The notes: generated by a model not told the origin, from the letters alone. A stretch of DNA of 64,000 nt from Prasinococcaceae sp. CCMP 1430 (GCA_013416795.1 RQSC01000152.1:24235-88234), one strand, 5' to 3'. Shown: positions 4,182-64,000, counted from the first letter of the stretch. A program made the numbers and translations.

Positions 4182-5477
4182 TGGACGGCGCAGGGCGGGC
4201 GGCGCGCGGGCCAGATACGCGCGGTGCGGCGGGCGACGCCTGCCGCTCGTTCGCGGTCGAGGAACTCCCCTGGCTGGCAGCCCCGTCCATCCCGGGGCCG
4301 GGTGGCAGACCCTCGTTCAGTCAGGCTTCGGTCGAGGAGAGGCGGTGAGTGGGCGTTCATACCGGGATGCCTCGATGGGCGCACCCCGGGGTCATTCCGC
4401 CGGCGGGGGGCCTGCCCCCAACCCAGATCTGGTGCCGTGATCGCGGCCGCCCGCCGCTGCGCCAGCCAGTCTGTCGAGCGCCCGCGCTGCCCCGCGTAAG
4501 CTATGGTTCATAGGCGCGCTTCCGCGGGGCGGGCTCCGGCCGCCCCCCCCCCCCCCCGCCGTCGCCGCCGCTGCCATCAGTCAGGGTCTACGCGTTCCGC
4601 GCCCGGGCGCAGCGGCAGGCGCGCGCGCGGGCGTTCGGGGAACGGCCGCTCATCAAATCCCATCCGAGTCGCGCGCGGCGCTTCGCGCGGCGAGCGACGG
4701 GTTTCGAGTGGGTTCCGCTCGGCCGGGCGCGTGTGGCGNACGTGCAGGTTGGGCACCGGCGACGACATGCTCGTGTCCGGAGGCGAGCAGGCGGGCGGGT
4801 CGGTCTGGGGCAGATGCGGGCGGAGAGTGCGTGGCTGCGGTCGCGCGCGCTGTGGCGCGCCCGCGCCCCCCTCTCTCCCCTCCCCCTTCCGTGCGGCGCG
4901 GGCGGCGCGCCCGCCCGTCGCCGCGCGGCGCGTGGCAGCCCCGCACTCCCACGTGGCAGCGATCGCAACGGCCCCCAGAAAAATCCGCCGCGGCGGCCCT
5001 TCCGAGGCCCAACCGGCGCTCAAACGTAAGCACACCTTCGATTGACACCGGCGGCATTCACAGACCGCAGATACTGCAATGATTAAAACTGCCCATGATG
5101 TGATATGATATGATACGCGCGGCCAAAATGATACTTTTCTGACAATGTCTGGCAATGCCTGCTCCGTCCGCCCGACGCCCGAGGCGAGGGCGCGTGCCGA
5201 CGGCGTGCAGGGCGAAATCTCCGCGAGGATCTCCGAGGCGGCGCCGGCTGGGGTTCTAGAAGGATCGGACGCGCGGAGAGGGGGGCTTCCGTCCCGAGCA
5301 CGTGTGTGTGCGTGTGTGTGCGCGTGTGTGCGTGTATGTGCGGGCGGGCGGCGCGATCGCTGCGCGGGGCAACGGACCGCTGTGGTGGCGGGGGGGGGAG
5401 AGAGGCGCCGGTGGCCATACTGCGTGCGAAGGCGCGCGCAGACCACGAGCGCACGCGTGCGCTCGGCCACAGCCGCC

Positions 5478-7022
5478 ATGGTGTCCTTGCGCGCGGTCTG
5501 CGCGGCGGCAGGCGTCGCCGCGGCGGGCCTCGCCGCGGCCACGCCCGCAGCCGCTGACTTTGCTACGACCGGGTGCGGCTACGGCTACGGCTACGGTTAC
5601 GGCTACGACTACGGCTACTCGGCCGCCGGGGGCTGGTACGGCGACGGCTACGGCTACGGAGATGACCTCGTCTTCGGCCACTTCCCCTGCGTCCCGCCCG
5701 CGCCTGTGCTGCCGCCCGCGGCGATGCCGCCGCCGATGACAACAATGCCGCCGCCGGTGCCGCCATCGGTGTCGCCGACGATGCCGCCGACGATGCCGCC
5801 GTCGATTAAGCCGAGCGTGCCCCCGATGCCCGCTGTCACCTACCCTCCCATGGGCGGCTACTACGGCTATGAATTCGTTGGCGAGTACGGCCTCCCTCCG
5901 ATGAGCCCCCCCGAATTCGACCAGGACAAGTGCATCTGCGACCCCTCAGAGCTCCTCGCTATCTTCGGCGAAGTCTCCGAGAAGACGCTCAACTCGTACG
6001 GCGAGGCCGTCGTCCAGGCGATCACATCGTCTGATGAGCAGTACGGCCTGCTCATCACGGGCGAGCCGTGCGAGTGCCCGGTGTCCTCTCCTCCCGTCGC
6101 GTCGTCGCCCACGGGCAAGTCGCCGGTGCCCTCGCCGCCCCCCACCCCTACGCGTACTGTGGTTACCACCGTCGCGTTCGGCAGCGCCGAGGACCTGGCA
6201 GCGTTCGACATCGACCAAGCAATCGCGGATGCTGTGGCAGACCAATTGGCAAAACTCGGCGAGGGCGCTTCGGTCGATGCGACAGCCAAGATTGTCGTGA
6301 CCGCGGTCTACCTGAAGCCGGACTCAATCACTTGCGCGGTTTTCGTCGCTGGCTACGCCACGGCGTCCGGAATTGACGCAACTCTCGTGGACGGTGGGTG
6401 TGATGCCAGGCATCGCCTCGGACGTTCGATGCTCGAGGCTTCGGAGTCGTCCGAGATTAGCATCGTGGTGGAGGTCGACGCAGCGCAAAAAGACTTGGCG
6501 GTTTTGGCCGCTGGCCTGAACGTGGACAGCCTCTCGGCCGAGCTCGGTGTGACCATCGAGCAGATCGGCGAGATCAGCATTGATTTGGTGCTCACCTTCG
6601 AGATCATCGCGATGGACGCCGGCCTCGACCTCGACGGCCTTGACTTGGCTGGGGAGATTTTGGGCGCCATCGAAGCCGTCGCGGACGCGGCTGGCATCTC
6701 AGTCGATGTCGAGACCACTGTCGAGGAGGAGGACGAGACACCCGCAGACGAGACGCCCGCGTCGAGCCCGCCGCCGCCCGCGGGCACCGTGGAGACGCCC
6801 GCGTCGAGCCCGCCGCCGCCCGCGGTCACCGAGGAGGACGACGACGGTTCGAGCGGGCTCGACGGCGGCGCCGCCGCGGGCATTGCCGTGGCGGTCGTTG
6901 TCGTCGTCGCCATCGGCGCCTTCGTCGTCTTGCGCATGCGCAAGAATGCGGAGGAGGAGAGCTTCGACACGCTTGGCGAGGGCGGCGCGATGCAAGAGGC
7001 CGCCTCGGGTGGGCGCGTGTAG
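5478..7022 (+). CDS. type I membrane / cell-surface glycoprotein with Gly-Tyr repeats and Pro-rich (extensin-like) segments
   Basis: Strong start context gccgccATGg; signal peptide MVSLRAVCAAAGVAAAGLAAA; GYGYGYGYGYDYGY; MPP/SPP runs; SSPPPP repeats; C-terminal TM GIAVAVVVVVAIGAFVVL followed by RMRK. Confidence 0.75.
   Translation: MVSLRAVCAAAGVAAAGLAAATPAAADFATTGCGYGYGYGYGYDYGYSAAGGWYGDGYGYGDDLVFGHFPCVPPAPVLPPAAMPPPMTTMPPPVPPSVSPTMPPTMPPSIKPSVPPMPAVTYPPMGGYYGYEFVGEYGLPPMSPPEFDQDKCICDPSELLAIFGEVSEKTLNSYGEAVVQAITSSDEQYGLLITGEPCECPVSSPPVASSPTGKSPVPSPPPTPTRTVVTTVAFGSAEDLAAFDIDQAIADAVADQLAKLGEGASVDATAKIVVTAVYLKPDSITCAVFVAGYATASGIDATLVDGGCDARHRLGRSMLEASESSEISIVVEVDAAQKDLAVLAAGLNVDSLSAELGVTIEQIGEISIDLVLTFEIIAMDAGLDLDGLDLAGEILGAIEAVADAAGISVDVETTVEEEDETPADETPASSPPPPAGTVETPASSPPPPAVTEEDDDGSSGLDGGAAAGIAVAVVVVVAIGAFVVLRMRKNAEEESFDTLGEGGAMQEAASGGRV
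6750..6825 (+). repeat. 34-nt direct repeat encoding ETPASSPPPPA twice
   Basis: gagacgcccgcgtcgagcccgccgccgcccgcgg at 6750-6783 and 6792-6825. Confidence 0.9.
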
Positions 7023-44838: not shown

Positions 44839-47733
44839 CTACGCGCCGCCCCTGGGGTCGTCGTTGACGTTGGCGTTGCACAGCGTGTCCTCGCACACGA
44901 TGAGCTGCTGGATGAGGGTGGCCACCTCCGCATTGCCGCCGAGCGCCTTCGAGACGCGCACGCACGCGTCGTCCTCGTCATCACCCGCGCGCAAGCCATC
45001 CATGATGTGGTACGCCTCGAGGAAGTTCTGCGTGGTCACAGTGTCCTCGAGGTACAGCCGCAGTGCCTCGGCGCGCGTCGAGACAGTGTCGTCATCTGAA
45101 ACGTTCGGGAGCACCACCTCAGCCTCGCCAAGGATGAACTTGGGAAAGGGTGGCGTCCAGGGCTCAGAGCCATCCACGTCGTCGTCGTCGTCGGGCAGGC
45201 CCCTGCCGTACTCCGGGCAACGCGCGCCGAGCACCGCGGCGCGCATCTCGGCAAGCACAGCCTCGCGCTCGGCGCTGTCGAGGTCAGCAGCTGCTTCCGC
45301 CTCGGCCCGAGCAGCGCTCACTGCCCTGGCCGCAGCCTCTTCACCTGTCTCGCAGCCATCATCCTGAGCACCGCCCTCGCCAGCGTCGACCCCGCCCATC
45401 ACCTCGCCCTCGCCCGCGTCCACCGCCCGCTGCGGCTTGAGCTGGTAGGCCGCCCCGCCTTCGCTGCTCGTTGCGGCGTCGCGTATACCCTCCTGGCCAA
45501 TGGCACGGGCGGCGTCATCTGCATCGCTCTCCTGGTTGCAGCTCCACCTACAGAGATCGGCGTGCACATTGCACCTATTGCGTCGCGCGGCTGCGCGCGC
45601 CTCACCGAGGTCGGCGCGCATCGCCGCAGCCAGTTCGGCCTTCCGCGCCTCGGCTGCGGCCTCGCGATCGCGTTCGCGACGAACCCGCACCTCGTCGGGC
45701 GATTCTCCGTCGCTATTGCTGCCCTGCTCAACGCGTTGCGCCCCGTGCTGCATCGCCTCAGCAGCGTGCAGCGCCACAGAGCTCCCCACCGCAGCATTTG
45801 TGCCTACATTGGCCTCGATCTCTGTAGGTTGGCCCGAGAGGTCGCGCTGGCAAGCGGCACGGTTGCGTGCTGCCGCCGAGCGAATGTCCTCGTACGCGGC
45901 GCGGCGTTCGGCGGCGGTGGGTGCCGCCGCTGCGATCGCGATCACCGGTGGTCCCGTCTGTACGCTGCTCCCAACACACACACGTTTGCCCGCACCAGCT
46001 TGGAGTGTCCGCGCGGTCGGCGCCGCATGCGCCGCAGCCATCTTGGAAGCTGCAGGGGTACCTGCACCACGCATTGGCGCGGCAAAGATCTGTACCTCAG
46101 CGGGGCGGACGGCGCCTTCGGCGTTGGCCGCGGCGTTTCGCCGACGCCCTGCTACCATCATCTCGCGCCGCGCCTCGGCCAAAGCCTGGGCCTTCGCCTC
46201 CCTCGCGGCAGCTGCAGCTGCGCGACGCTCCGCGGACTTTTGCGCGAGCATTCGGTGGCGCGATGCGCGCTCGGCACGCAGGCGCGCGTCTTCGGCCTCG
46301 CGGTTGCGCTGCGCTGCCTCGGCGCGCATGCGCTCCTCGGTACGGCGCTGCAACGCTGCCAGAGCCTCTGAGTAGCGACTCTCCTTGTCACACTCCCGTT
46401 CGCGCTTGCGCCTGGCCGCGACGGCCACAGCGTTGGGTGCCTTGGTGATAACACCACCACCGGCGTGTGCGTCGGTCGGGGTGCCCGCCTGCCTGCTTCC
46501 TGCACTGCTGGGCCTCGCAATGCCGCCGCCGCCGGGCAGTGCGATGGCCTTCGCCGCGGCGGCAGCCGACAGAACGCGAGCTTCCGGCGGTAGCGGCGGC
46601 TTGCGCTGCGCGCTGTTCGTGCGAACGGACTCTGGCGAAGCCGTAGCCACACAGGCGGCAGACCTAACGTCCAACGGCGAGCGCTTGCCCTCAAGCGCCT
46701 GCGCGCCCGCTTCCGCCTGGGCGCCTTCAATCTCTCCTGGCGACAGGAACTTAGCCACGCGTCTCTGCACGATGGGCCTCTCCAGGATCCTGTTGATTCC
46801 CGGGCGTTTGCTAGGGTCCTTCTGCAGCATCGCCGTAACGAGGTCGCGCATGCCCTTCGAGTAGCGCGTGGCGGGTACGGGCGTGTAGATGCCGCGCACA
46901 ATCTTGAGCACTAGAAGCTTGAGCGAAGCAGCGTCGAACGCGTGCCTGAAGGTGGTGAGCTCATACAGCACACAGCCAAGCGACCACACGTCGCTCTTGG
47001 CGTTGTAGGGGCGGTTCTCGCAAATCTCTGGCGAGAGATAGTAGGGCGTGCCAACCTGCGTGTGCGCCATCTGGTGCGTGCCATTCAGGACGCGCGAGAC
47101 CCCGAAGTCCCCCAGCTTGATGACCCCCGCCGCAGTAAGAAACAGGTTCTGCGTCTTGCTGCGGGGCGAGTGGCGGGCGGGCCGTGGGGGCAGCGGTGCA
47201 GGGTGCTTTGGGGTCAGCTGCACAACAAAAGATGCATGGCTCTGAGCACGTCTTGGAGAAGCGCCTGAATGTCACGCACATGTCACGGTGCAGTATCTTC
47301 CTGTCGTGGAGGTGCTTGAGCGCAAGGCATATCTGCACCAGCCAGTCGAGCACGTCGTCCTCGGAGAGCGGCATGCCCTTGGCCTTGAGGCGGTTGAGCC
47401 TGTCGTGCAGGTCGCCTCCCTGGCAATAATCCATGACGATGCACAACGTCGAGCCGCGCATGAACGATCCATGGCAGCGTACGATGTTGGGATGGTGCAG
47501 CGAGCCGAGCACTTCGGCCTCCTTCTTCGCCTCGGCGCGCTCCTTGGCGCTCAGGCGCGCTAGCTCGATCTCCTTGATGACGCGCTGCATGCCACTCGCG
47601 GCGTCGCGGACGAGAACCGCGCGGCCAAAGCTGCCCGTGCCGAGGACTTTCACGTTGGTGAACTGGCTTGCCTTGTGCGCGCCGCGGTCGCCCCCTCCGC
47701 GCCCGCCTCGCGCACACTCACGGCGCCACTCAT
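44839..47733 (-). CDS. NEK: NIMA-related kinase (NEK1-like) with long coiled-coil tail; exons 47733-47722, 47662-47280, 47158-44839
   Basis: VLGTGSFG, VIKEI, HRD-I|KTQNLFL (splice gacAT|gtgcgt...cag|Caag), DFGVSRVL, GTPYYLSPE, YNAKSDVWSLG; NEK-type C-terminal domain RAEALRLYLE...FLEAY. Confidence 0.92.
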
Positions 47734-49695: not shown

Positions 49696-52158
49696 TCAGT
49701 GCGGGCTCGTGCTGTTGTCAGAGTTCTCCGCACGCGCGCGTAGCGCGCGATCGGCGCGCGCCTTGACCTCGCTGCGGTCCGGCACGTCGAGCGCCTCGAC
49801 TTCGGCCGCGTTCATGAAGCCTCTTCCTCCATTCACGTCCCTCTTCGCGCCCCGAAAGGCACCGCCACCACCGCCACTGCCACCAGCGTCCTCACCATCG
49901 CTACCAAGCAAAAGATTGCCATGCAGTCGTGCAAAGGCGTGGCGCGCAGAGGCCTGGCCCGCGTTGATCCCCTGAAATGACCCATCCGGCAGGCGCAGCG
50001 TCTCGGCGAGCTGCCCAGCCAGTGCTCCAGCGCCAATGCTCTCGCGCAGCTCACGAGCGCCGGCCTTATTACCCACACTGTCGGCGAGTTTGTCCATTAG
50101 TCGGTCCAATGACGACGACAGCTCGGCGAGGAGGCGGCTCGAAGCATTAAATACTCGCGGCAGGTCGGCGCCGGCGTTGTTGCCAGCAAGGTCACCCGCA
50201 CCCGTGTCGGAGCCGGCAGCGTCGGTGGCATCCTCATCCTTGGCCTTGTCACCACCGCGCCCCTTACGGCTGTGGCTGGGCCAGCGAGGGCGAGGTTTGC
50301 CCGTGTTGCCGCGATCGACAGAGCCAACGCCCGACGAGACAACACCCGCATTGCCATCGCGCCCGACGCTTTCATCGCCGCCGCCGTCCTCTCGATGCAC
50401 CGACAGCATCGCCTCCTCGTCGCCCAAGTCGTCATTCGCACCACCGCCATCACCACTGCCGCCTCTGAGCCCGGCGCTGCTGCCCTTGCCGCGACTCGCA
50501 CGGCCGCTGGCGGCGCGAAGCGCACTCGAGAGACCGCCCGAAAGCTGTCCCAGCCCGTGACGCAGAATCTCCATGTGTGACACGATGCCCACATAGCGCG
50601 CGCGGGCTGCCTCGATGCGCTTCCTCGCGAGCTCGATCTTGCGGTCCCACTCGTCGATAGCGCGCCGCTCCTGCCACGATCGGAAGCCAGCCACTTTGCC
50701 ACCGTTGAGCATCTCCGTATAGTGTTTGAGCTCCTGCTGTTTTATTCGAATGGTGTCCTCGGCCTCCAAGGTCCGCCTGCGCGCGGTCTCCTCGGAGTTA
50801 TTCAGCCCCTTGAAGTGAGTAATGATAGCCTCCACCGCGTCGGCCTGCGTGCGCACGTGCGGGCACGCCAGCCGCTGCAGCTCACAAAACTTTGCGTCCA
50901 AGCGCTGCGCATTTGCGTCGGTGGCTGCTTGCAGTATGGCATTTGCCGCATTCTTGACCTTGCTCCGTCTTTCCTTGACCACCTGAGGTCTCCTCGAGCC
51001 CGCGAGCATCTCCTCGCGCTTGATCCTTTCCTTCTCCTCCTCAATTTTCCGCTTCTGCAAGCGCTTGATCTCTGCGCGGCGACCGGAGAGACGCAGGGCG
51101 AACTCTTTTCGCCCGGCCGCGACCTCCTCGCGCAGGACGCGCAGCGAGTCGGCGGCATTGTCAGCCGCCTTGTCGACGCCGCGGGCGTGGATCTCGAGCG
51201 ACGTGCTATCGTGGATGCAAGCATCGCGCTCTTCGCGCAGCTCTGCAACGCGAGCACTCGCATGCACGAGCCTCTTCTGCTCACGATTCAGCATCACGGT
51301 GTAGGTGCGCGCATCCACCAACGCCTCGCCATGTTTCTGCTCGACCACGGCCATGGAGTGGCCGGGCGGACGCTCGCCGCCAAAACCATCAAGCGACGCC
51401 TGCAGGGTGCCCTGCTCTTTGTAGAGCTCAAAAGCTGAGGCCATGTCCTTCAGCACGGAGCGCTCGATGTCGAAGAGCTGAGCCTCGCGCTCGAGGTCAG
51501 CGAAGCGACCCTCGAGGCGGCCGCGCGCCGTCACGGTAGCATTGTACTGCGCACGCAGGGCGTCAAGCTCGCCCTCAGCCCGCGCAAGGCGCGCCATGCG
51601 CCCGTCGCCATCAGCAGCGTCGCGGCGCGCCCTGTCCAGGGCCTTCCGGAGCGTTGAGCGCTCGCGCTTCGCCGCCGCAAGCTCCTGCGCAGCGGCGGCG
51701 GCCGCACCAGTAAACTCGGACGACGACGTGCCTCGCCCCCCCCCAGTGGTGCTCCCCGCACCTGCAGCGACGTTCAGGGTGCGCGCGGGCGGCGCGGCGC
51801 GATCGCTTCCCGTGTGTATCAATTCCGCAATGCTACCTCGATCCTCCTCGCCGCTGCCATTGCCGCCCGGCGCCTGCCTGATCGACGGGAGCAATGTGAC
51901 GTGTGTGCCTGCCTGCGTCCTTGCGCCCGCACCGCGGCCATCAGCGCCCACGCTCAAGGTTGCCTCATCAGCTGAGCCGAATCGTTCTTTTAGGTGGACG
52001 CCATGGTGCTTAGAAAGGATCGTCCGGAGTGCGGGCATGTCACTCGCGAGCTGATCGACGCGTTTGAGCTTGGGGAACTTGGGCACTGCCACCGACTTGT
52101 AGCCCCCAGAGCCATTGCTGGAGGCGCCGCCGTGGCGGGCAAGTGGTGAGCCGCCCAT
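49696..52158 (-). CDS. large coiled-coil protein, outer dynein arm docking complex-like (CCDC151/ODA10 or DC1/DC2 family)
   Basis: Extended heptads; segments EALVDARTYTVMLNRE and KFCELQRL...AVEAIITHFKGLNNSEET resemble ODA-DC family patterns. Family call is from memory only. Confidence 0.5.
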   Translation of the reverse strand: MGGSPLARHGGASSNGSGGYKSVAVPKFPKLKRVDQLASDMPALRTILSKHHGVHLKERFGSADEATLSVGADGRGAGARTQAGTHVTLLPSIRQAPGGNGSGEEDRGSIAELIHTGSDRAAPPARTLNVAAGAGSTTGGGRGTSSSEFTGAAAAAAQELAAAKRERSTLRKALDRARRDAADGDGRMARLARAEGELDALRAQYNATVTARGRLEGRFADLEREAQLFDIERSVLKDMASAFELYKEQGTLQASLDGFGGERPPGHSMAVVEQKHGEALVDARTYTVMLNREQKRLVHASARVAELREERDACIHDSTSLEIHARGVDKAADNAADSLRVLREEVAAGRKEFALRLSGRRAEIKRLQKRKIEEEKERIKREEMLAGSRRPQVVKERRSKVKNAANAILQAATDANAQRLDAKFCELQRLACPHVRTQADAVEAIITHFKGLNNSEETARRRTLEAEDTIRIKQQELKHYTEMLNGGKVAGFRSWQERRAIDEWDRKIELARKRIEAARARYVGIVSHMEILRHGLGQLSGGLSSALRAASGRASRGKGSSAGLRGGSGDGGGANDDLGDEEAMLSVHREDGGGDESVGRDGNAGVVSSGVGSVDRGNTGKPRPRWPSHSRKGRGGDKAKDEDATDAAGSDTGAGDLAGNNAGADLPRVFNASSRLLAELSSSLDRLMDKLADSVGNKAGARELRESIGAGALAGQLAETLRLPDGSFQGINAGQASARHAFARLHGNLLLGSDGEDAGGSGGGGGAFRGAKRDVNGGRGFMNAAEVEALDVPDRSEVKARADRALRARAENSDNSTSPH

Positions 52159-53416
52159 GCGCGGCTGCCTCCAGTCACCGCCGGCGGCCGCCAGCAGCCC
52201 CTGTCCACGCCGCGGCAGCACCACCCACCGTCCTCAGGCCTCCGCGTAGCCACGCCCACGCCGGCGCGGCAGCGGGCGCCGCCGCGGACACGAATTGGTC
52301 GCGCGCACGCGGGCGCGCACGTGTGGCATTCGGAACGGCGCGGCGTGCCCAAACCGGCGCGCGCTCCGGGTTCCCCCCCGCCCGATCCGTCGCGGCTGCG
52401 CTCGCCGGTGCACAGCGAAATGCCCGGGGCCAATGTCACATACCGGGTCTACGGCATGCATGAACGACCAATGCAAAAGTGGCCGAATAGGGTGTGCTGC
52501 CGGGAAAAACCCGGATTAGTGTCGGGTGCGGGCGCGTCCGCGCTCGCGCCCGCGCTGGACAGGCAGCGGCGCGCCGGCGCCAGGCGGCGCACCGGGCGGC
52601 GCGGCATGCATGGATGGGCTCTTACGATAGCTGTGGCCGCGCGCTCTTGCCGCAACCGCTGGTGCGCCGCGCAGCGCGGTGCGGCGGGGGCATCGCGCGC
52701 TCGTACCGCGGCGCGCCTCCTGCGCCGCGCAACGCCACTGTAGACTAGTGCCTACTGTACACATCCTGGGTGTCGACGTGGACGCATCAAGATCATCTCG
52801 CAACGAGACAGAGATCCCGCAAGATATGCACCACGGCCATGGGAAAGCGAAAGGTCCTCATGGGGCGCTCCGGATGCGTTTCGATATGGCAGCGTTCCCC
52901 CATGCCGCGCGCTTCCGCCCTCGCGCGCGCGGCATCCCCGGGAAGGAAAAAGAGGCACGCTCGCGCGCGTGGCGCGGCGCGGAGCGGAGAGGGGCGGGGA
53001 GGGGCGCCCGCCCTCGGCCCCGAGCACTCCGCCCTCCGCCCCAAGCGCTCTGCTGCACGCCCCCCGCGCTCGCGACGCCAGTCCCCGCGCGCGCAGCGTG
53101 CGCAGGCGGGGACGGCGGGGACCTATTCAAATTTACATCAGACCCCCGAACACAACACGTGTGTTAGGGCTCGCGTGCCGCGTGCACCGTGGGCAGCTGG
53201 GCCGGCACGCGCGTGCGCGCCCAGCCGGAGCACACCGGGCGGGAGTGCACCGGGAGACGGGCAGGCGCCCCGCCACGCCGGCCGTATCCTCGCGCCTTCG
53301 CGGCGCGCGCGTGCCAGCTCGCTCGCGGCCCGGGTCGACGCACGTGGGCGCAAGGGCAGCAGGGGGCCGCAGCGGCGGCGGCCGGCGGCCGCCGCCGCGG
53401 CGGCGGCAGGGCCGAG

Positions 53417-56400
53417 ATGATGCGAAGCGCTGGCTGTGGCGCACGCGGCTTCGCCCGTGTGGCCACGCTTGCGCTCACGGCCGCGCTCCTACCGGCGCTG
53501 TGTACGGGCTCGTTGTCGGACTCCACTGCGGGCGCTCTGTGGAGGGACCGCGGCGCGGGCGAGCAGCCAGAGGCGCGTTCGCATCATGCAACCACCGATG
53601 GCGCAGGCGGTAGCGCGGCGATGTACATCATCGGCGGGTACTCGTACTACTACAGGTGCGCGACGCCGGTGGGCTTGCTGCGCGCTCGCGCGGGGCGTGC
53701 GCTCTTGCTCGGAGGACGCGCGCGAGCTCGCATGTGGTGCTAACAATCAGCCGCATCCCGCTCTCCACGCCCCAACCGTGCCCAACCCACCCATGCTCCT
53801 CAACGCCCACTCACCTAAACAAATTCATTCACCCCGCTGCGCCTGGCGCATACCACTCGCGCGAGCGTAGGGACTGCATAAATGATGTGTGGGCGCTGAG
53901 CACCGATGCACGTAACTGGGAGCTACTGTACGACGGCTACGGCGAAGACGGCCACGAGAGCGAGGAGAGCGGAACGGCACCGCGTTCGCGCGTGTGGTCG
54001 ACCGCCGCGGAGTCGCTCGTCGACCCGGGCTTGGTATACCTTTTCGGTGGCTACAACTGCGCAGCGCTCACTGGCGCCTCGATGGACGCCACGCTCTCGG
54101 ACTTGTGGGTGTTTGATAGCGGAGAGCGCCAGTGGAGTCTGCTCGAAGTCGCCTCCTCGCAGCCGCCCCCGCGGCGGTATCACCACAGCATGGACGTGAT
54201 TCGCGAGGACGGCCACGACGTGCTCCTTCTGTTCGGTGGGCAGCTGGACTCAAACCTCCACTTACGAGACCTTTGGCGCGGGGACGTCGACGCTAACACC
54301 GGCACCGTCGAGTGGTTTGAGCTCGCGCGCCCTCCATCGTCGCTCACCGCCACGACTCGCCACGCGTCAGCCGTTGCGCCCGACGGCTCGGCGTTTTACG
54401 TGCACGGCGGCATGGACTCGGCGTCGTCCTCCGACGCGCTGCACAGATACGTCGTGGCCACCAACAGATGGGAGCAACTCAAGCCATCGAGCGAGGCACG
54501 CATGGACCACTCGCTTATCGAGTGGCAGGGCAACCTCATAGCAGTGATGGGTGGATCCACGGCCGCGCAAGTTGCCATCGAGTACACCGACCTGGACGGC
54601 AGGAGCTGGCGCACGATCGCCGCAGGTGAGAGCGAGAGCGAAGCCGCCGGCGAAGGCAAGGGTCGCGCGCCGCAGACGCTCTTCGAAGCGGGGTCCACCG
54701 TCGTAGACGACGTCGTGTACATATTCGGTGGATTTTCCAACCTGCCCGGCTCAAGGGTGCACATCAAGCAGAGCGACGTGATGTGGGCGTTCCAGCTCGG
54801 CGCCGATCCAGAAGGCCAGTGGGGTGCGGGTCTTGGGCCCATTCCCACCGCGCGTATCGACACCGCCATGATCTCGCTCGCATCCACGCTCATCATGTAC
54901 GGTGGCGCCACCCCCTTCGTCACTTACAATCCCGACCCCAACACGGAAGATGGCCCGGACTCAGGCGCCTCCGACGATGACGACGGCGGCGGCGGCGGCG
55001 GCTTGAGCACAGGTTTACTGCCGCGCAGTGACGTGTGGCTTTGGTTCGGCGATCAGTGGCATGCCGCTGAGACGGTTGGATGGGACCAGGGCGACGCGCG
55101 TTTTGGCCACACGGCTGTGCACGTCGGCGGAGGTAAAGTGCTCGTGTACGGAGGCCAGGACTCGGGCGCGCGTCGCCTCGACGACCTGTGGGTGTTCACT
55201 GTTGACACTGGGTCCGTTGGCGGCAAGAGCGTCGATGTGTTCACGCCGCCCGCCGTGAGGTGGACGCGGCTTGAACTCAGCCGCGGCTGGTCGAGCACGC
55301 CCCAGGGGCGCGACAGGCACACTGCGGTGGTCATATGGGATTCGCTCGCCGAGGAAGCTCTGGCGCACTCGCTGGCCGGGGACGGCAGCCCGCGAATGTT
55401 CGTCTTCGGTGGGCTGCGCGAATGGATATTTGGCGCCGGAGAGGCACCAAGCAGTGAGGTGGTCAGCTTTGACCTCGACCAGGGCTGCTGGACTGAGCAC
55501 GGCGGCGGAAGCGCCTACGATGCGTCTGGCTCAATGGTTGGGACGGGCGGCGGCGCGTGGCCTCGTCCTCGCGCACGCCATGCTTGCGCATCGCAGCGTC
55601 TCCTCATGTACTGTTTCGGTGGCTTGGTGCACACTAGTCTCGAGGCCGAGGATCCAATCGCAGCCAGCATGAGGGCCGACAGCGAATTCTGGGTGTATCA
55701 TCCACCGCCACGATCCGATGGGTGCGAGTCTGCAGCGAGCGGCGAGTGGTCGCTGCTTCCGCCCGAGTCAGCGGGGGTCTGTCCGCATCCGAGATATGAT
55801 CACTCGCTCCTGCCCTACCATTCTTCTGATTCTCCCCAGAACACGGGCGAGACGCCCGCCACCTTCGTGCTGTTCGGCGGTAGCGGCAAGGTACTTGGGC
55901 AAGACCCGTCCTCAGAGGCGCGGGAGGTCTCGTTCAGTGACGTGTGGCTTGCCCGCGTGGACGAGGCAGCTGGCCACGTTGTCTGGCAACAGATCTACCC
56001 CGCAGCGCAAGCGCCGCTGCCGGCTGGCCCGTCGAGTCATGCAGCGACAATGATGGGCGGCGTGGCCTTTGCCCTCGGTGGCGTGCACAGCACGCACCTC
56101 CAAGCGCTATCACCCGCCGCCGGGCTGTCGGGGTCGTCCAATGCGCTGGTTTCGCTCGACTTGGACGACTGCCAGGACGTGTGCGTGGGCTGCGCCACTT
56201 CACAGTCAAAGGAGCGTCGATGTTTGTCAGCGGCGTATCTATCGAGCATGCACGTCAGCCTTGACGTCGAGTGGGCGCGATTCGGCGCGATGGCCGGCTC
56301 TGGCAACACCGCGCTGCGCGTATACGACGCGAATGGCAACAGCGTGCCGCACGTGGCCGTCGAGCTGAACGACACGCGCGCCGGCACGCCGCGCTGGGAG

Positions 56401-59211
56401 CTTTCGAATGTCTGGCAGCGCGCCGAAGAGGAGCGCTTTACGATCGAAATCGTGCTCAACGGGGTTGCCGCCGCTCGCAAGCTCGATCTGGTCAATCACG
56501 GCGACGTCGCCCACATCCAGATAGACCCGCCCGAGGCCTCGACGCTGAACGTGGTCGTTGCCTATCAGCACGGTGCGGGTGTGCCGTACGCTGCAATCAC
56601 GCTGCGCTGGTGGGACCCCGAGCAGCGCGGCTTTGAGGACCTCCTCGGGCCCCTTACCGCCGACGAGAACGGCACGGCTGCGATCACGCTGCCCTCGGGC
56701 GCGTACGCGCGTCCAAACGAGCGTTATGAGGTGGTGGCATCGGCGCCGCGCTTTTCGGCTCCCGGCGAGCTCGAGGCGCGTGCTTCGATGATGGCTGCAG
56801 AGCTGATGGCGGGGGCCACCCACACGCTCACTGTGATGATGCCCCTCGATGGCTCGGCTCCGTCGCCGCCGCCGCCGCCCGCTTGGGCACCCGGCGCCAG
56901 CGGCAACGGCCCTGGTGTGGCGCTCGTAGTCGTCACGCTACCGAGCATTGCCGACATCGGTTTGCGTTTTATGCTGCGCATGGTTGAAGCGGACTCGGAA
57001 GACGCTCGCGCCGCGCGCTCGCGCGACTGGGATTTGGCCGACGGCCACCGCGGGCCGGCCTTCAAGGGCCCGCTCGTGGCCGAGCGCGTGCAGCCAAATC
57101 CCCTCGATGCGTTGTCTCCCTCGGCGAAGTGCACCTCAGATTCCACCGATGGGTGCAATGAGTACGGCGAAATTCGCCAGCGGTTTATCGGCCTGCGGCC
57201 CACCGAACACGTCGCAATCCTGCACGAGTGCATCGACAACGCGTGCGAGGTCCTGTCGCCGCCGATCGCGGTGAGCGACAGCGCGGCGATCGCTGCGGAT
57301 GGCGTGGCGCACACCGTGGAGATTCGCACGCTGCGAATGTATCTCAGTGGGCGGCTGGCGTATCCGTCGCTCGAGCTCGGCAGAGCGCACGGCCAAGGGG
57401 TGGGCGCGCTGAATGTGAGCATCGCGCTGTGGGATCCGCTGACCGAGCTCGTGCCGGGCGACGGCGAGCGCATGCCTGGGCGGGCAGACGGCGTGGCGCG
57501 CATCACGACGGCCGAGGACGGCTGGCTGGCGTGCCAGATTTCCTTTAGCGACCACCTTGGTGGCGTACCCGCCGTCGACGGTGAACCGTGCATGCTGTGG
57601 TCAACTGCCGAGTACTACGTCGAGGCGTACGCAAACGTCGTCGCCGATTCGTTAGGCAGCGGGTGGGCGGGGAGGCAGGTGATAAGCGCCGTGCACGTGC
57701 CCGTCAAGGCGAGTGAGCTGGCGGACTGGACGGATAGCATAGGCTTCCCGCCGGTGCTGCCGCTGCTCGCGCAGGGAGGGAGCTCCGGCCATCGTTGCGC
57801 TGCCGGGCCCGCGGGACGCTCATGGAATCGCGATGCAGTGTACTGCATCATCGACGCAATGGACTTCTGCGAGAGCGTGCCCCCGTTGCTCACGAGTGGA
57901 AAGCCAACGCTCGTGCCGCAGCGTTTTGACCAGGGGGCGACTCTGTACTCGCCCGGGCGCGAATGCCTGTGGGCAGTGCGTCCAGATCCGCCCTCAATGC
58001 AAATCACCGTGCGCATCGTTGCCTCTGGGCTGGCGCCCGGCGACCAGGTGGTGGTTGCTGCTGCCCCCGACTGCGAAAGCGACACATGCGGCGCGCTTGC
58101 GCTCGACGGCGAATACGGCATGACGAGCAGTCGCACCGTCGGCGTGCGCGGCGAGGTGGCATATGTCATTCTTCGCCCTCATATGGGCTCCGTGCCAACA
58201 CGCCTGGGCACGGGCTTTCAGTTCGAGTTCGTGAGCGTATCTAACGACGGCTTCTTCCCGCGCGTGGATGCGCTCACCATGCTAGCGACGTTCCTTCTCA
58301 CCGCCACGTGCTGCCTGCTTGGCAGCATGTGGAAGCGCTACATCCGCCCGCGCCTCGTGCGCATGATGGGAGGCGAGGCGGCCGTCGAGATGCAGGCTTT
58401 GACCGCCGCGGCCGCGGCCGCGAATGGGGGACGGCCTGCCCGCGGGGGTCTCGACGCACAGACGCGCTCGCGCGCGCTTAAGCGCGTGACGTATTCCAGC
58501 AAGGGCTCGGCGGCCGTCTCGGGTGGCGCTGATGCTGAGGGTAGCGACCGTGAGGGCGCGCGGACAGAGGTGGGGGAGGGAGGGCAGCTGGCAGGTGGTG
58601 CGGACGATGGCACCGTCGGCGAGGAGACCGGCGAAGACGTGTGCGCAATCTGCCTGGTCGAGTTTGAGGACGGAGACGAGCTGGTCGAGCTGCGCTGCAA
58701 CCACCGCTTCCATGGGGAGTGCGTCGACTCGTGGTTGCGCGTCGACGTGGTGTGCCCACTGTGCCGCGCGGACCTCCGCGAAGAGGAGCACGCGGACGCG
58801 GACGCGTCTCCTACGCCCAGCTCGGGCGCCGCAAGCGACTCGGTCGCAGTCGATGTGGCACCCGCTGGGCCCGGGCCCGGTGACGGCGACAACGCCGACG
58901 TGGCAGACTCAGCACCGCCACGCGTGCCGCGCAACGCTACGCTATCGCCGCTGAGTGGCGCGAGTCCGTCCCGCATAGCCATGCCGCGCATCGAGACGGA
59001 CAATTACAGATCGGAGGCGCCGGCGGAGGCGAGCGCCCTGTCGTCGCCGGGCTCGACGCCGAGGGGACTGGCGCGCGTCCCTCTGCCGCCCGTGCGCGCG
59101 CGCGTGGCGCCCGCAGGCAGCACAGAGGACGATCCGGAGCAGGAGCCTGCCGCGGTGTCCGTGCGGATAGACCGAGCGAGCACAAGCAGCGATAGCTCCG
59201 CGCGGCTTTAG
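53417..59211 (+). CDS. receptor-like RING-H2 E3 ubiquitin ligase: signal peptide - 12 Kelch-like repeats - unknown region - CUB-like - TM - GLD - RING-H2 (~1859 aa); intron 53656-53870
   Basis: Signal ARVATLALTAALLPALCTG; twelve hydrophobic-GG Kelch motifs; TM MLATFLLTATCCLLGSMW (~58279-58332); GLD at 58447-58455; CAICLVEF...LRCNHRFHGECVDSWL...CPLC (58642-58764). Junction AG|gtgcgc...gcgtag|G is in phase. Confidence 0.85.
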
Positions 59212-59635
59212 AGAGAGAGAGAGGAGAGACTAGCTAGCTCTAGCCCGCTCACGAGAGGAGCCACAGGTTTGTGTCGAGGCTTCCGCGTTGCATCCCACCG
59301 AGGCACCTGGAGGCACGCGCCGCCACCGCGACGGCGCGAAGAGGCCAGGCCGTGCCACGTTCGGTGATGCCGCCTCGAAGCGCGGGAAGCGAAGAGGAGG
59401 GGGTAGCGAGTCGGGCGCATCCGCTGTCGCCGGGCGCGTGTACGGCACGTGCGGGCGCTGCGCCGCGCTCCTGCCCGCGATGCTCTGCGGGAGCTGCGCT
59501 GCAGACGGGCTTGATCGGGCGAGCGCCTCCGTGGGAGCAGCGGCGAGAGCACACGCTGCACAGGGCGAATGGCTCGCGCCCCTCTCCATACCGAACTGCC
59601 GCGTCGAGGAGTGGTGACAGAGGCGAGCTCGCTGN

Positions 59636-60027
59636 GCGCCCGCGCCTGAGGCGGCGCCGCCCGCGCCGCGCGGCGCCAAGATGAAGCCGCTCCTCCTAAG
59701 CGTCGCCGTCGGCGCCGCTGTCTGGTTCGCGCCCGTCCCCGCGGAACTCGCCGCAACCGCCATGGGCATCAAGGCCTGGAAGCTGCTCGCCGTCTTCCTC
59801 GGCACCATCGTCGCCATCATCACGCAGGTGAGGACGCGCCCGCGCGCCAGGGAGGGGGAGAGGATGTGCGCCGAGTGCGCCGCCGCCGTCGCTCCCGGTG
59901 GCGCATTTTCGTGCGCAGCCCTCGCCTGCGCGTCGCCGTCGCGCCACACAGCGCGGGGGAGGCGCGGAAGACGCAAGGGGAAGGCTGGGGGGCAGCGTGG
60001 CGGGGGGCGATCGGGGAATGGGGCGGC

Positions 60028-60066
<39 letters not shown>

Positions 60067-61854
60067 GCCGGCGCAGGCCGTCCAGATCTCCCCGTCACCG
60101 CCGAGCCCGCAGGCCGCGGCGCTGCTGTTGGCCGCGCGCGAAAATCGCGCGCCCCGCACGAATGCGAGCGGAAATATCCTGCCCGAAAAAATATCGCAGG
60201 TGCCGCGCGCGGCTGAAAGCGGGGCGCGGTGGCTGGGCGCATGGACGCGCGCAGGGGGCCTGGGCGCGGCTCGGCCGGGTGGCGGTGGCGGTGGTCGGGG
60301 GGGGGGGGCAAGGATGGCGAGAAAGAGTTCGTGTACGACGTGGAGGGCCTCCATGACAAGGGCAGTGGAAGGTATTGTGTGTGTTTGGTGGTGGTGGGTG
60401 GGTGCGGAGGGGGGGTGCCTGTGATCGTGATCGCCGCGCGGTGGGGCGCGGGGCGACGCGGCCATGCGACGCGATGCTCTGGCGGCTGGCTGGTGGCGGC
60501 GGGCACGCTGGCGGTTGCGCCCGATGTGCTGTCTGCTGACGGCGATCCTTGCACGCGCGCGCATGCTCCCGCGCCCTCGCAGCCCCTGCCACTGGGCGCC
60601 GTCGCGCTCATGGGGCTGGGCGCCGCCATGACCCTCAAGGTGATGACCTTCCCGCAGGCCTTCAGTGCGATGGCGTCGCCCATCCCGTGGCTCATCGCCA
60701 TCGCCTTCTTCTTCGCCAAGGGCTTCATCAAGACCGGCCTGGGCAACCGCATCAGCTACCTGTTTGTGAGGGCATTCGGCAAGACCACGCTCGGCCTGTG
60801 CTACTCGCTCGTCTTCGCCGAGGCGCTCCTCGCGCCTGCGATCCCGTCGCTCGCCGCTCGCGCCGGCGGCATTATGAAGCCGCTCGTGGAATCTCTGAGC
60901 ATCGCGTGCGGCTCCAAGCCCGACAACGGCACCGAGAAAAAGATGGGCGCGTACCTCATGGCCACCATGTTCCAGACCTCGTGCATCTCTTCCGCGATGT
61001 TCCTCACCGCCATGGCTGCCAACCCTCTCGCAGCCAACCTCGCCGAGGCCGCGACGGGCCAGGTCATCTCGTGGGTCGGCTGGGCGACCGCCGCGTTCGT
61101 GCCGGGCGTCGCTGCGCTCATCCTCATTCCGCTCCTCGTTTTCACCATCTACCCGCCCGAGATCAAGGAGTCGCCCAACGCGCCCGAGCAGGCCAAGGCT
61201 GAGCTCGCGAAGATGGGCAAGATGAGCGGCGACGAGAAGATCGTGGCTGCCACGCTCGTGCTCACCGTTGGCCTGTGGATCTTCGGTTCCCAGTTCGGCA
61301 TCGGCTCCGTGTGCGCCGCCATCATCGGCCTGTCCATTCTCATGATCACTGGCGTGGTCGGCTGGAAGGAGTGCCTCGCGCAGGGCGTGGCGTGGGACAC
61401 CCTCACTTGGTTCGCGGCGCTCATCGCGATGGCCGACCACCTCAACAAGTTCGGCCTCATCGGATGGTTCTCCGGGCAGGTGACCAACGTGGTCGGCGGC
61501 CTGGGCCTCGCCTGGCAATCCACGCTGCTCATCCTCATCGCCATCTACGTGTACTCACACTATGCCTTCGCGTCGGTCGCCGCGCACATCGGCGCCATGT
61601 ACACCGCTTTCCTCAGCGTCGCCGTGGCGCTCGGCTCGCCCCCGCTCGCGTCGGCGCTCATCCTGGCCTTCGTCTCCAACCTCATGGGCTGCACCACGCA
61701 CTACGGCATCGGCTCGGCGCCGCCCTACTACGGCGCCGGCTACGTGTCGCTGCCCGAGTGGTGGAAGATCGGCTTCATCTGCTCCGTGGCGAACCTCGTC
61801 ATCTTCCTCGGCCTCGGCTTCCCGTGGTGGAAGTTCTTGGGACTCATGGCGTAA
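59636..61854 (+). CDS. DIT1: plastid 2-oxoglutarate/malate translocator (DASS family, DiT1-type); intron 59828-60582; transit peptide lost at N 59635
   Basis: RGAKMKPLL...AWKLLAVFLGTIVAIITQ|PLPLGA; WLIAIAFFFAKGFIKTGLGNRI; PSLAARAGG; SSAMFLTAMAANPL; THYGIGSAPPYYGAGYV; GFPWWKFLGL. Confidence 0.92.
60030..60063 (+). repeat. poly-G tract (~34 nt) in the DiT1 intron
   Basis: Direct reading. Confidence 0.9.
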
Positions 61855-62117: not shown

Positions 62118-63602
62118 TTAGATTATTACGAAGGGCGTCTCGCGGCGCACGGCGCCCGCCGTCGCCCCTGCAGCTCGGCGCTCCTCGAAGAGGCTCTGGC
62201 CGACCGCCTGGATGGGGCCGCCACCCAGGCACTCGTCGCCGTCGTACAACACCAGCATTTGGCCGGGCGTGATGGCCTTGGCGGGCTCGTCGAAGCGCAC
62301 GACCACACCGGCGCCAGCGCCCCCGCTCATCGTCTCCACGCCTCCGAGCGCCGCCTCGGGTGCACGCCAGAAGCCGCTCGGTGGCACGCGCGGCGCGTGT
62401 GCGCTCGACGCCGCCCACGCGGTGGCTCCCGCCGTAGGGGTGGCGTAGCGCGCCTTGAAGGTCACCCGCATCCCAGCGACGCTGTCGGCCGCCGCCGGTG
62501 CCGCGCCCGCCACCCATGAGAAGGCGCCAGTCGCGGCGCCACGAGTGAGCAGCGCGTCGCTCTGCGACTCGCGCGCGACGTACAGCACGCGCCGCTGCGC
62601 GTCCTTGCCGGCGACAAAGTAGGCCTCATTGGCACCGCCTAGGCGCGCGCGCTGACCGATGGTGTGCAGTGCCACGCCAGCATGCGCACCCACAGCACGA
62701 CCGCTCTCAACGTCAACGAACTCGCCGGCCTCGAGCCCGCCGGCGACGTAGCTCGAGATGAAGTCGCCGAAACGCCGGCGACCCACGAAGCACAGCCCGG
62801 TGCTCGTCCGCTTCTGAGCGACATGCAGCGCGCGCGCCGCAGCGGCGGCGCGAACGTCCGCCTTGAGCATCTCACCAAGTGGAAAGAGCGCGCGAGAGAG
62901 AGCGCCACTCCCAACGCCCGCCAGGAAATACGACTGGTCGTACGCGGTGTCAGCGCCAGCGAGCAGCGAGACGAGAGAGCCCGACGCCGACCCCGCGCGC
63001 GGACGTAGCCGCGCGTAGTGGCCCGTCGCGACGAGGTCGGCGCCCAAGCGCCGCCGCGCGTGCTCGGCGAAAGCGCCGAACTTGACGTGCACGTTGCACG
63101 CCACGTCTGGGTTTGGCGTGAGCCCGGCAGCGTACGCGTCGAGGGCCGGCGCAAACACCTCGTGCCAGTACTCGCGGCTTAGGTCCGCCTCGGCCAGCTC
63201 GCAGCCCAGATCGCGCGCGACGCGGCGCGCATCGGCGCGCTCGGCCGCCGCCTCGCAGTGCTCGGGGCTGTCGCCGTCGCCGCTGCCGCCCTCCTCGGCC
63301 GCGTCCCAGCTGCGCAAGTGCGCGGCGACCACACGGTGCTCATTCGCGGCGCACAGCAATGCCAGCGTTAGCGCCGAGTCCACGCCGCCCGACACGCCCA
63401 CCACGACCGTCTTGCGCGTCGACAGGTCGATGGGGATACTGTGGGCGGTCTTGTTGTTGTCTTTGCTACTTGAGGAGGAGGAGGACGACGACGAGAGGGC
63501 GTTGGAGCGAAGTGCGAGTGTGTTCGCATGGCCGAGGGCGCGCCGAGCGACGGCGGCGGCCACCGCGGCACGCGCTGTGCGAGCGGCGGCAGCGAGCGGC
63601 AT
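62118..63602 (-). CDS. mnmA: tRNA-specific 2-thiouridylase MnmA/TRMU (organellar)
   Basis: VVVGVSGGVDS (PP-loop), TPNPDVACN, VATGHY, DQSYFL, STGLCFVG, HTIGQR and ITPGQ. Ala/Arg/Ser-rich targeting peptide from MPLAAAART. Confidence 0.93.
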   Translation of the reverse strand: MPLAAAARTARAAVAAAVARRALGHANTLALRSNALSSSSSSSSSSKDNNKTAHSIPIDLSTRKTVVVGVSGGVDSALTLALLCAANEHRVVAAHLRSWDAAEEGGSGDGDSPEHCEAAAERADARRVARDLGCELAEADLSREYWHEVFAPALDAYAAGLTPNPDVACNVHVKFGAFAEHARRRLGADLVATGHYARLRPRAGSASGSLVSLLAGADTAYDQSYFLAGVGSGALSRALFPLGEMLKADVRAAAAARALHVAQKRTSTGLCFVGRRRFGDFISSYVAGGLEAGEFVDVESGRAVGAHAGVALHTIGQRARLGGANEAYFVAGKDAQRRVLYVARESQSDALLTRGAATGAFSWVAGAAPAAADSVAGMRVTFKARYATPTAGATAWAASSAHAPRVPPSGFWRAPEAALGGVETMSGGAGAGVVVRFDEPAKAITPGQMLVLYDGDECLGGGPIQAVGQSLFEERRAAGATAGAVRRETPFVII

Positions 63603-64000
63603 GGCGGCGCGAGTGCTCGGTAAGCACCTCTCCGCCGCGGGCGAGCAAGCACTCAGCCTGAGAGGGGGCGCAGCCGGGGGCGCGCGCGCGCGCGCGCCCG
63701 CGCGCGCGCGCACTCTGGCGAACCTGCGGCGCACCTCACCTGAATGCCACATGCGCGCGGTGGCGCACCTGCGCCCAAACCCCACCAGGCGCGCGCGCTC
63801 CTGCCATTCCCGACGTGCCGGCCTGCATCCAGCCTCTACCCTGTCCTCCCCTCCCCTCCCCCTCGCTGTTGCCTCCGCCGCTTGCGCGGCACCACACGCC
63901 ACCATAGCGCCTGGCAGTACGCGCGTGCGCGCGGCCGTGCGCACCGCCACGACATCCGGGCGGCGCCTTCCTCTTCTCGTCGGTGCTCAGGTCGTCAGCC

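Follow-up and report, generated by a model that had tools for sequence, protein, structure and literature searches.

Does the locus between positions 53,417 and 59,211 of a 64,000-nt stretch of DNA from Prasinococcaceae sp. CCMP 1430 (RQSC01000152.1:24235-88234; the whole stretch is hereafter called the window) code for one polypeptide which unites a Kelch-type ectodomain with a ubiquitin ligase (E3)? A preliminary description of this DNA had proposed such a protein, comprising a signal peptide, twelve Kelch motifs, a cysteine cluster, a CUB-like segment, one transmembrane (TM) helix and an ATL-type tail with a RING-H2 domain. At the gene level, the single chain, predicted to hold Kelch outside and RING inside, is real and conserved in two species. 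Judged from its sequence features, we consider it probable (roughly 0.6) that this one real gene encodes a type I membrane protein serving as a receptor-type transmembrane RING-H2 ubiquitin ligase.

One gene from Kelch repeats to RING-H2

The spliced coding sequence comprises 5580 nt in two exons and translates into 1859 amino acids (aa). The coordinates and spliced length given in the preliminary description are confirmed by splicing in silico, by the GC content at the three codon positions and by an orthologue. The ATG at 53417 is the first in-frame ATG downstream of the upstream stop codon, with none in between. Exon 1 ends with ...YIIGGYSYYY-AG/GT at 53655/53656, the spliced junction reads YSYYYR/DCINDVWAL, and the plus strand harbours an open frame of 1851 codons from 53656 to 59211. 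The GC content amounts to 66-70% in this region and to 67.6% in the whole window. In every 450-nt interval of exon 2, including the parts encoding the low-complexity spacer and the C-terminal tail, it increases from codon position 2 via position 1 to position 3, while it is nearly flat by comparison in both flanks of the gene and in the intron.

A k-mer search led to a cluster of sequences (P0001) which are 98-99% identical to the window protein and occur in assemblies of marine metagenomes and in Logan, among them a Tara sample (surface, 0.22-3 µm); the near-identical genomic contigs L001 and L002 retain the intron of the window gene. To this cluster belongs the EukProt model P0003 (1709 aa), which is identical to the window protein and already links Kelch to RING, but begins at an internal methionine, residue 151; exon 1 with the signal peptide is thus missing from it, and so are Kelch blades 1 and 2. 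The one true relative, P0016 (E 3e-166, 47% identity), emerged from an exhaustive HMMER search of the middle region of the protein against 1.84e9 representatives. Its gene is found on contigs from Tara metagenomes, 10-30 kb long with 69% GC, and occupies positions 5358-5825 and 6202-11118 of contig L003. The encoded 1794 aa are collinear with the window protein over the full length (46.7% identity), all elements occurring in the same order. In both genes the path from Kelch to RING is one uninterrupted open reading frame (ORF) without any stop codon or frameshift, which bears out the presence of Kelch repeats, TM helix and RING-H2 in one polypeptide. Chance is ruled out by the coding GC bias extending through the entire ORF together with the 47%-identical orthologue that displays all elements in order.

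The orthologue also provides evidence on the 5' end. It contains the region of the splice junction as YSYYYRDCLDDVWAL, uninterrupted, and this region (GYSYYYRDCLDDVWAL) lies within one exon which includes the N-terminus as well. As P0016 thus reads through the junction in a single exon, both the splice junction and the N-terminal signal-like segment of the window protein are confirmed. The introns of the two genes occupy different sites, namely after codon 79 (phase 2; 53656-53870) in the window and after codon 156 (phase 0; L003 5826-6201) in the orthologue, which points to intron gain, loss or sliding in the lineage.

The protein is lineage-restricted, being known so far from only two prasinodermophyte-like algae, and the family consists of two 50%-identity clusters among 1.84 billion representatives. 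Apart from P0016, the HMMER search yielded one fragment and two spurious bacterial repeat proteins and no second relative at the 50% cluster level. When the middle region, the TM-RING tail or the Kelch region served as query, word-indexed searches retrieved the near-identical cluster, P0016 and two unrelated ecto-Kelch proteins only; the search with the tail was uninformative, since a RING by itself cannot score significantly against 5.8e9 sequences. Two scans of JGI metagenomes, one derived from the profile and one with the back-translated CMLWSTAEYYVEA pattern, returned nothing.

Comparison of the flanks of the P0016 gene with the 64-kb window revealed no synteny, the flanking genes being unrelated. 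On L003 (1-5021 and 11285-14754) the neighbours encode a Patched/sterol-sensing protein, a Tectonic-like protein (DUF1619), a WW-cofilin/ADF protein and a PPK2 polyphosphate kinase, none of which has a match in the window. The neighbours in the window encode a DASS/Na-sulfate-symporter-type transporter (60229-61854, plus strand; PF00939, 1e-128), an MnmA-like tRNA 2-thiouridylase (62118-63950, minus strand; PF03054, 1.5e-59) and a protein kinase C-lobe (44839-47223, minus strand). Two long antisense ORFs (49696-52224 and 59230-61518) have no Pfam match; the second overlaps the transporter gene and is probably an artefact of high GC content.

Table 1. Positions in the window of the gene parts and protein segments, and their identity to the orthologue P0016
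Feature	Position (nt)	Strand	Identity	Remarks
Exon 1	53417..53655	+		79 codons plus 2 nt; start codon, signal-like peptide, first Kelch blade to YSYYY(R)
Intron	53656..53870	+		215 nt, GT..AG, phase 2, CTAAC branch-like site
Exon 2	53871..59211	+		single ORF; stop codon 59209-59211
Signal-peptide-like segment	53417..53509	+	30%	aa 1-31; basic n-region, 17-residue hydrophobic core, small residues before Kelch
Kelch blades 1-6	53564..54831	+	48%	aa ~50-400, spans the intron; probably first six-bladed propeller
Kelch blades 7-12	54832..56166	+	41%	aa 401-845, longer loops; probably second propeller
Four-Cys cluster	56167..56226	+		C-x3-C-x2-C-x9-C, directly after last Kelch blade; 4/4 Cys invariant in P0016
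Middle region	56227..57786	+	43%	~520 aa, beta-rich; 8 conserved Cys, conserved NVS/NVT sequon
CarboxypepD_reg-like segment (weak)	56545..56754	+		transthyretin-like beta-sandwich; PF13620 E 9e-5, 23 bits, below 32.3-bit cutoff
Pro-rich linker	56854..56916	+		SAPSPPPPP-x-WAPGASG-x-GPG; extensin-like Ser-Pro5; nearly invariant vs P0016
Juxtamembrane 6-Cys beta-sandwich ("CUB-like")	57787..58251	+	57%	best conserved ectodomain part
TM helix	58264..58332	+	61%	aa 1545-1567; Kyte-Doolittle peak 1.88
Predicted cytosolic juxtamembrane segment	58333..58494	+	61%	ends in GLD-like motif
Low-complexity spacer	58495..58641	+	33%	Gly/Ala/Ser/acidic; ~49 aa from GLD-like motif to RING; length conserved in P0016
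RING-H2	58642..58764	+	64%	aa 1671-1711; C-x2-C-x14-C-x-H-x2-H-x2-C-x10-C-x2-C
C-terminal tail	58765..59208	+	25%	Ala/Ser/Pro-rich, probably disordered

The Kelch region and the remaining ectodomain

All twelve hydrophobic-GG motifs listed in the preliminary description are present in the order given there, with those of blades 1-6 at aa 70, 136, 199, 256, 304 and 363 and those of blades 7-12 at aa 421, 504, 590, 660, 746 and 813. Searched with the whole protein, Pfam returns PF24681 (3.7e-50), PF24981, the Attractin/LZTR1 propeller (8.2e-38), and the families Kelch_1 to Kelch_6, all above threshold. Blades 1-6 alone score 111 bits with PF24681 and 100.6 bits (cutoff 50) with PF24981, covering positions 52-282 of the 289 positions of this six-blade profile; blades 7-12 reach 77.7 bits with PF24681 and, slightly below the cutoff, 48.9 bits with PF24981. 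Since Pfam families cover both halves and twelve motifs are present, two six-bladed propellers are likely. In PDB sequence comparison, the nearest solved Kelch domains are those of KLHL20, KLHDC10, KLHL17, LZTR1 and a nitrile-specifier protein, and by its sequence the Kelch region appears to be generic, with no special affinity to Attractin. The next-best Kelch relatives, P0020 (2106 aa) and P0021 (1580 aa), possess many Kelch repeats combined with modules of ephrin-receptor-like, NCD3G or TIG type but lack a RING; the Kelch module thus seems to be reused with varied partner modules in protists.

The cysteine cluster noted in the preliminary description directly follows the last blade and is conserved in the orthologue. 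A PSI-like reading of it was dropped, as there is no Pfam PSI or EGF match. In the middle region, the CarboxypepD_reg-like segment yields E 0.007 with PF13620 when a shorter piece is searched, and P0016 gives no match. An AlphaFold2 (AF2) model of a 698-aa middle region, computed from a three-row alignment, attains a predicted local distance difference test (pLDDT) score of 34 and was not used for fold search. Ser-Pro4+ motifs are a feature of green-lineage hydroxyproline-rich glycoproteins. The Pro-rich linker, which resembles such a motif, may accordingly carry O-glycosylated hydroxyproline.

In front of the membrane there is a conserved beta-sandwich, with CUB-like landmarks recognised by eye (LYSP...C-LW-V, an I-T-V-R strand, D-x-V-V-V, a CG pair and GFQFEF). 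The label "CUB", however, is not borne out by sequence, since the Pfam family CUB (PF00431) does not match positions 57601-58350 even at E<=10, and a search of the PDB with a two-sequence profile of the domain, likewise at E<=10, does not yield a CUB chain either. The AF2 model of the isolated domain is of low confidence (pLDDT 47.7; predicted template modelling score 0.45), and a Foldseek search with it yields nothing at E<=1e-3, its weak matches being meprin, carbohydrate-binding modules (CBMs), GOLD domains and some CUB domains. CUB identity of the sandwich, weakly suggested by this modelled fold, is hence unproven.

Membrane span, cytosolic tail and RING-H2

The claim of a signal peptide and of a single TM helix agrees with two hydrophobic segments, at aa 11-33 (Kyte-Doolittle peak 1.77, compared to 2.16 for its equivalent in P0016) and at aa 1545-1566. 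A third hydrophobic peak at aa 1093-1115 contains Asp and Arg and has no counterpart at the aligned position of P0016. Immediately behind the TM helix there is a basic stop-transfer cluster, WKRYIRPRLVR, and basic residues are found on this C-terminal side only, which fits the positive-inside rule and would place the RING in the cytosol. At an overall identity of 47%, 22 of the 23 ectodomain cysteines are conserved in the orthologue. The N-terminal hydrophobic segment, the TM helix with its basic cluster, the conserved cysteines, the sequon and the linker argue for a secretory or extracellular ectodomain; the predicted topology thus assigns Kelch to the exterior or the lumen and the RING to the cytosol. 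Close to the point where the TM helix would enter the cytosol there is a Cys-Cys pair (aa 1560-1561; 58306-58311) which is kept in P0016 and may be a site of S-palmitoylation.

The GLD-like motif GLDAQTRSRALKRVTY (aa 1606-1621; 58447-58494) retains G-L-D...L..(V/L)TY in the orthologue; its comparison with the ATL logo was made by eye only. Beyond the spacer follows a RING whose eight zinc ligands form a complete C3H2C3 pattern, as had been claimed, and are conserved in P0016. PF13639 (zf-RING_2) matches with 50.3-52.8 bits against a cutoff of 27.3 bits (E 2.8e-13 for the whole protein and 4.7e-14 for the tail alone). The nearest solved RINGs in a PDB sequence search are those of RNF38 (5e-14), RNF165/Arkadia, RNF13 (1.1e-12), ZNRF3 (2.5e-12), EL5 (5e-12), RLIM, RNF24 and Arabidopsis AT5G66160, which assigns the domain, by sequence, to the generic RNF38/Arkadia/RNF13/ZNRF3/EL5 class. 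Alignment with RNF38 reveals Ile after the first Cys, the Trp of VDSWL, and CPLCR with its Arg matching the RNF38 position after the last Cys. From such sequence proxies the RING is predicted to be competent for ubiquitin transfer dependent on a ubiquitin-conjugating enzyme (E2). Within the divergent C-terminal tail a PLPP(V/L)R patch (59080-59110) is conserved, which might be a docking site of SH3 or WW type.

Among the segments in Table 1, constraint is strongest (57-64%) in the membrane-proximal unit made up of sandwich, TM helix with Cys-Cys pair, juxtamembrane segment and RING, as would be expected if coupling across the membrane is the core function of the protein; spacer and tail drift (25-33%).

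Proposed function and comparison with known systems

A receptor-type ligase of this build might operate as follows. By way of the signal peptide, some 1500 residues would enter the secretory lumen and probably reach the cell surface, where two Kelch propellers, a cysteine knot, several beta-sandwiches, an extensin-like linker and the CUB-like juxtamembrane sandwich would be displayed, a single helix spanning the membrane. On the cytosolic side, the juxtamembrane segment with its GLD-like motif, a flexible acidic spacer and the RING-H2 would recruit ubiquitin-charged E2. What the ectodomain binds may be a glycan, a constituent of wall or matrix, or the outer part of a second membrane protein, allowing the tethered RING to ubiquitinate the cytosolic face of this partner or the ligase itself. 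Ubiquitination could in turn route its target to endocytosis and to degradation in the vacuole, in the manner of ZNRF3/RNF43 and MEGF8-MGRN1. Gating by a ligand and the endocytic step are purely inferred. Tentative at best is the more specific proposal that a fusion in a prasinodermophyte has reached the design of animal MEGF8/Attractin plus MGRN1, yielding a single-chain receptor E3 in which a double-Kelch sensor, through an extracellular glycan or protein ligand, controls ubiquitination and endocytosis of a partner.

Several observations weigh against a receptor-type ligase. The TM helix of P0016 has a Kyte-Doolittle value of about 1.55 (calculated by hand), just below the usual 1.6, and no segment above 1.6 is listed there. 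In the RING, the Pro of the usual L-P-x-C-x-H patch contacting the E2 is replaced by Arg (Thr in P0016). The middle region of about 520 aa matches no Pfam, NCBIfam or PDB sequence above threshold. As only two species carry the gene, the evidence from conservation is thin. Finally, plasma membrane and endomembrane location are not distinguishable from the sequence.

The main rival explanation we regard as possible, if doubtful: the same protein in the same topology could be a sorting or quality-control ligase of the endomembrane system (ER, Golgi, prevacuolar compartment), whose lumenal domains bind glycans on cargo or wall precursors and whose RING determines how the complex of receptor and cargo is trafficked or turned over, a role that has been proposed for the PA-TM-RING proteins RMR in plants and RNF13/RNF167 in animals. 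The solved RINGs nearest to the algal one include those of RNF13 and of AT5G66160, the latter in our view a PA-TM-RING protein of RMR type, and the succession of signal peptide (SP), lumenal domain, TM helix and RING-H2 is common to those families. Kelch and CarboxypepD_reg-like modules often bind carbohydrates, so the Kelch region and the weak CarboxypepD_reg-like segment would suit such a role. The Pfam matches of the algal protein, however, include no PA domain, and the SPPPPP linker and the very large ectodomain fit a surface- or wall-facing protein at least equally well. Unlikely, in our view, is an ectodomain with a merely structural or adhesive role in wall or matrix, the RING tail setting nothing but the turnover of the protein itself by autoubiquitination without signalling or targeting a partner. 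In its favour, protists have ecto-Kelch proteins with other tails (P0020, P0021), and P0016 retains the SPPPPP motif. Against it, TM helix, juxtamembrane segment and RING are strongly conserved compared to the ectodomain, which suggests that the cytosolic machinery matters equally. That the gene model is an artefact, in which a gene or transcript for a secreted Kelch protein and one for a small TM-RING protein share an ORF, or a decaying pseudogene, is highly improbable: the EukProt model differs at the 5' end and long chance ORFs occur in DNA of 67% GC, yet the 1851-codon frame shows coding bias throughout and is intact in both species, every segment and the domain boundaries are collinear in the 47%-identical P0016, and the EukProt model likewise joins Kelch to RING.

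Receptor-type E3s such as ZNRF3/RNF43 and MEGF8-MGRN1 form a small, actively studied class, most of whose members have been described in animals. A Kelch ectodomain and a RING joined by nature in one chain would demonstrate an independent origin of this design in the green lineage, and the algal protein would serve as a compact model of how an ectodomain is coupled to a RING across the membrane, within the limit that only two picoalgae, both poorly tractable, carry a member of the family. In addition, a truncated public gene model without signal peptide and two blades is corrected here.

As regards plant ligases, the preliminary description had called the tail ATL-type. ATLs are defined by a RING-H2 of 42 aa with exact ligand spacing, by N-terminal TM helices and by a GLD motif of 12-16 aa; R-x-LP and [I/V]D-x-WL are frequent, and no other recognisable domain was found in the ATL survey (PMC3161093). 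The algal tail shares with them the succession of TM helix, basic region, GLD-like motif and RING-H2 with [I/V]D-x-WL (VDSWL). In contrast, its RING spans 41 aa in both orthologues, with 14 residues between ligands 2 and 3 (X14; in the match to EL5, itself an ATL, 44 query residues are aligned with 45 chain residues), R-x-LP in front of ligand 3 is absent (VELRC; VELTC in P0016), the TM helix follows a Kelch ectodomain of about 1500 aa instead of being N-terminal, and about 49 aa separate the GLD-like motif from the RING. With two defining features failing, the tail is ATL-like in layout but not an ATL.

RING and Kelch repeats in one polypeptide are also found in Caenorhabditis elegans RIKE-1, which is tied to cytosolic proteostasis and for which no membrane span is reported (PMC9809964). 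From this we take both RIKE-1 domains to be cytosolic, whereas in the algal protein the membrane would separate them. In a catalogue of the groups of RING E3s in plants, Kelch does not occur. The claim that the architecture had not been described before holds for the literature searched, RIKE-1 being the one relevant case; domain-architecture databases were not covered by this search.

Receptor-like, membrane-spanning E3s are an established concept: MEGF8 or ATRN recruits MGRN1 via a tail containing MASRPF, plant GDU1 recruits LOG2, and ZNRF3/RNF43 are single-chain (10.1101/2020.05.25.113944; PMC12458338). Like ZNRF3/RNF43 and the PA-TM-RING proteins (RNF13, RNF167, GRAIL, plant RMR), the algal protein unites a signal peptide, an ectodomain, a single TM pass and a cytosolic RING-H2 in one chain. 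By sequence, its RING falls into the class of those of RNF13 and ZNRF3, and its X14 spacing equals that of RNF38 in the alignment. It differs from these proteins in its ectodomain, about 1500 aa of Kelch repeats and beta-sandwiches compared to a PA domain of about 150 aa, no PA-domain family occurring among its Pfam matches, and it adds to their layout a GLD-like motif and a 50-aa spacer in front of the RING.

With MEGF8/Attractin-MGRN1 it has in common the single membrane pass, the ecto-Kelch repeats, possibly a CUB-type sandwich, and the coupling to a cytosolic RING. The preliminary description had suggested that it could be a convergent or Rosetta-stone counterpart of MEGF8-MGRN1; the Rosetta-stone view is not sustained by our data. 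The MASRPF(A) motif is absent from the algal juxtamembrane sequence WKRYIRPRLVRMMGGEAAVEMQ, and a reading of "MAs" therein as an MGRN1-recruiting motif was dropped for want of a match or of conservation, the Met-Gly not being kept in P0016. The Pfam families EGF/laminin-EGF, PSI, C-type lectin and CUB give no match at E<=1 with the whole protein or at E<=10 with pieces of it, and the Kelch repeats are of a generic type. Nor is the RING MGRN1-like; the tail, searched against PDB sequences, gave no MGRN1 at E<=0.001, the presence of an MGRN1 chain in that database being unchecked. In MEGF8/Attractin-MGRN1 and GDU1-LOG2 the ligase is a separate protein that has to be recruited, whereas the algal RING is covalently attached. 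With no MASRPF, no MEGF8-type modules and a RING of a different class, the algal protein is best regarded as an analogue of the MEGF8-MGRN1 system that arose by domain fusion, and not as a fusion of its homologues.

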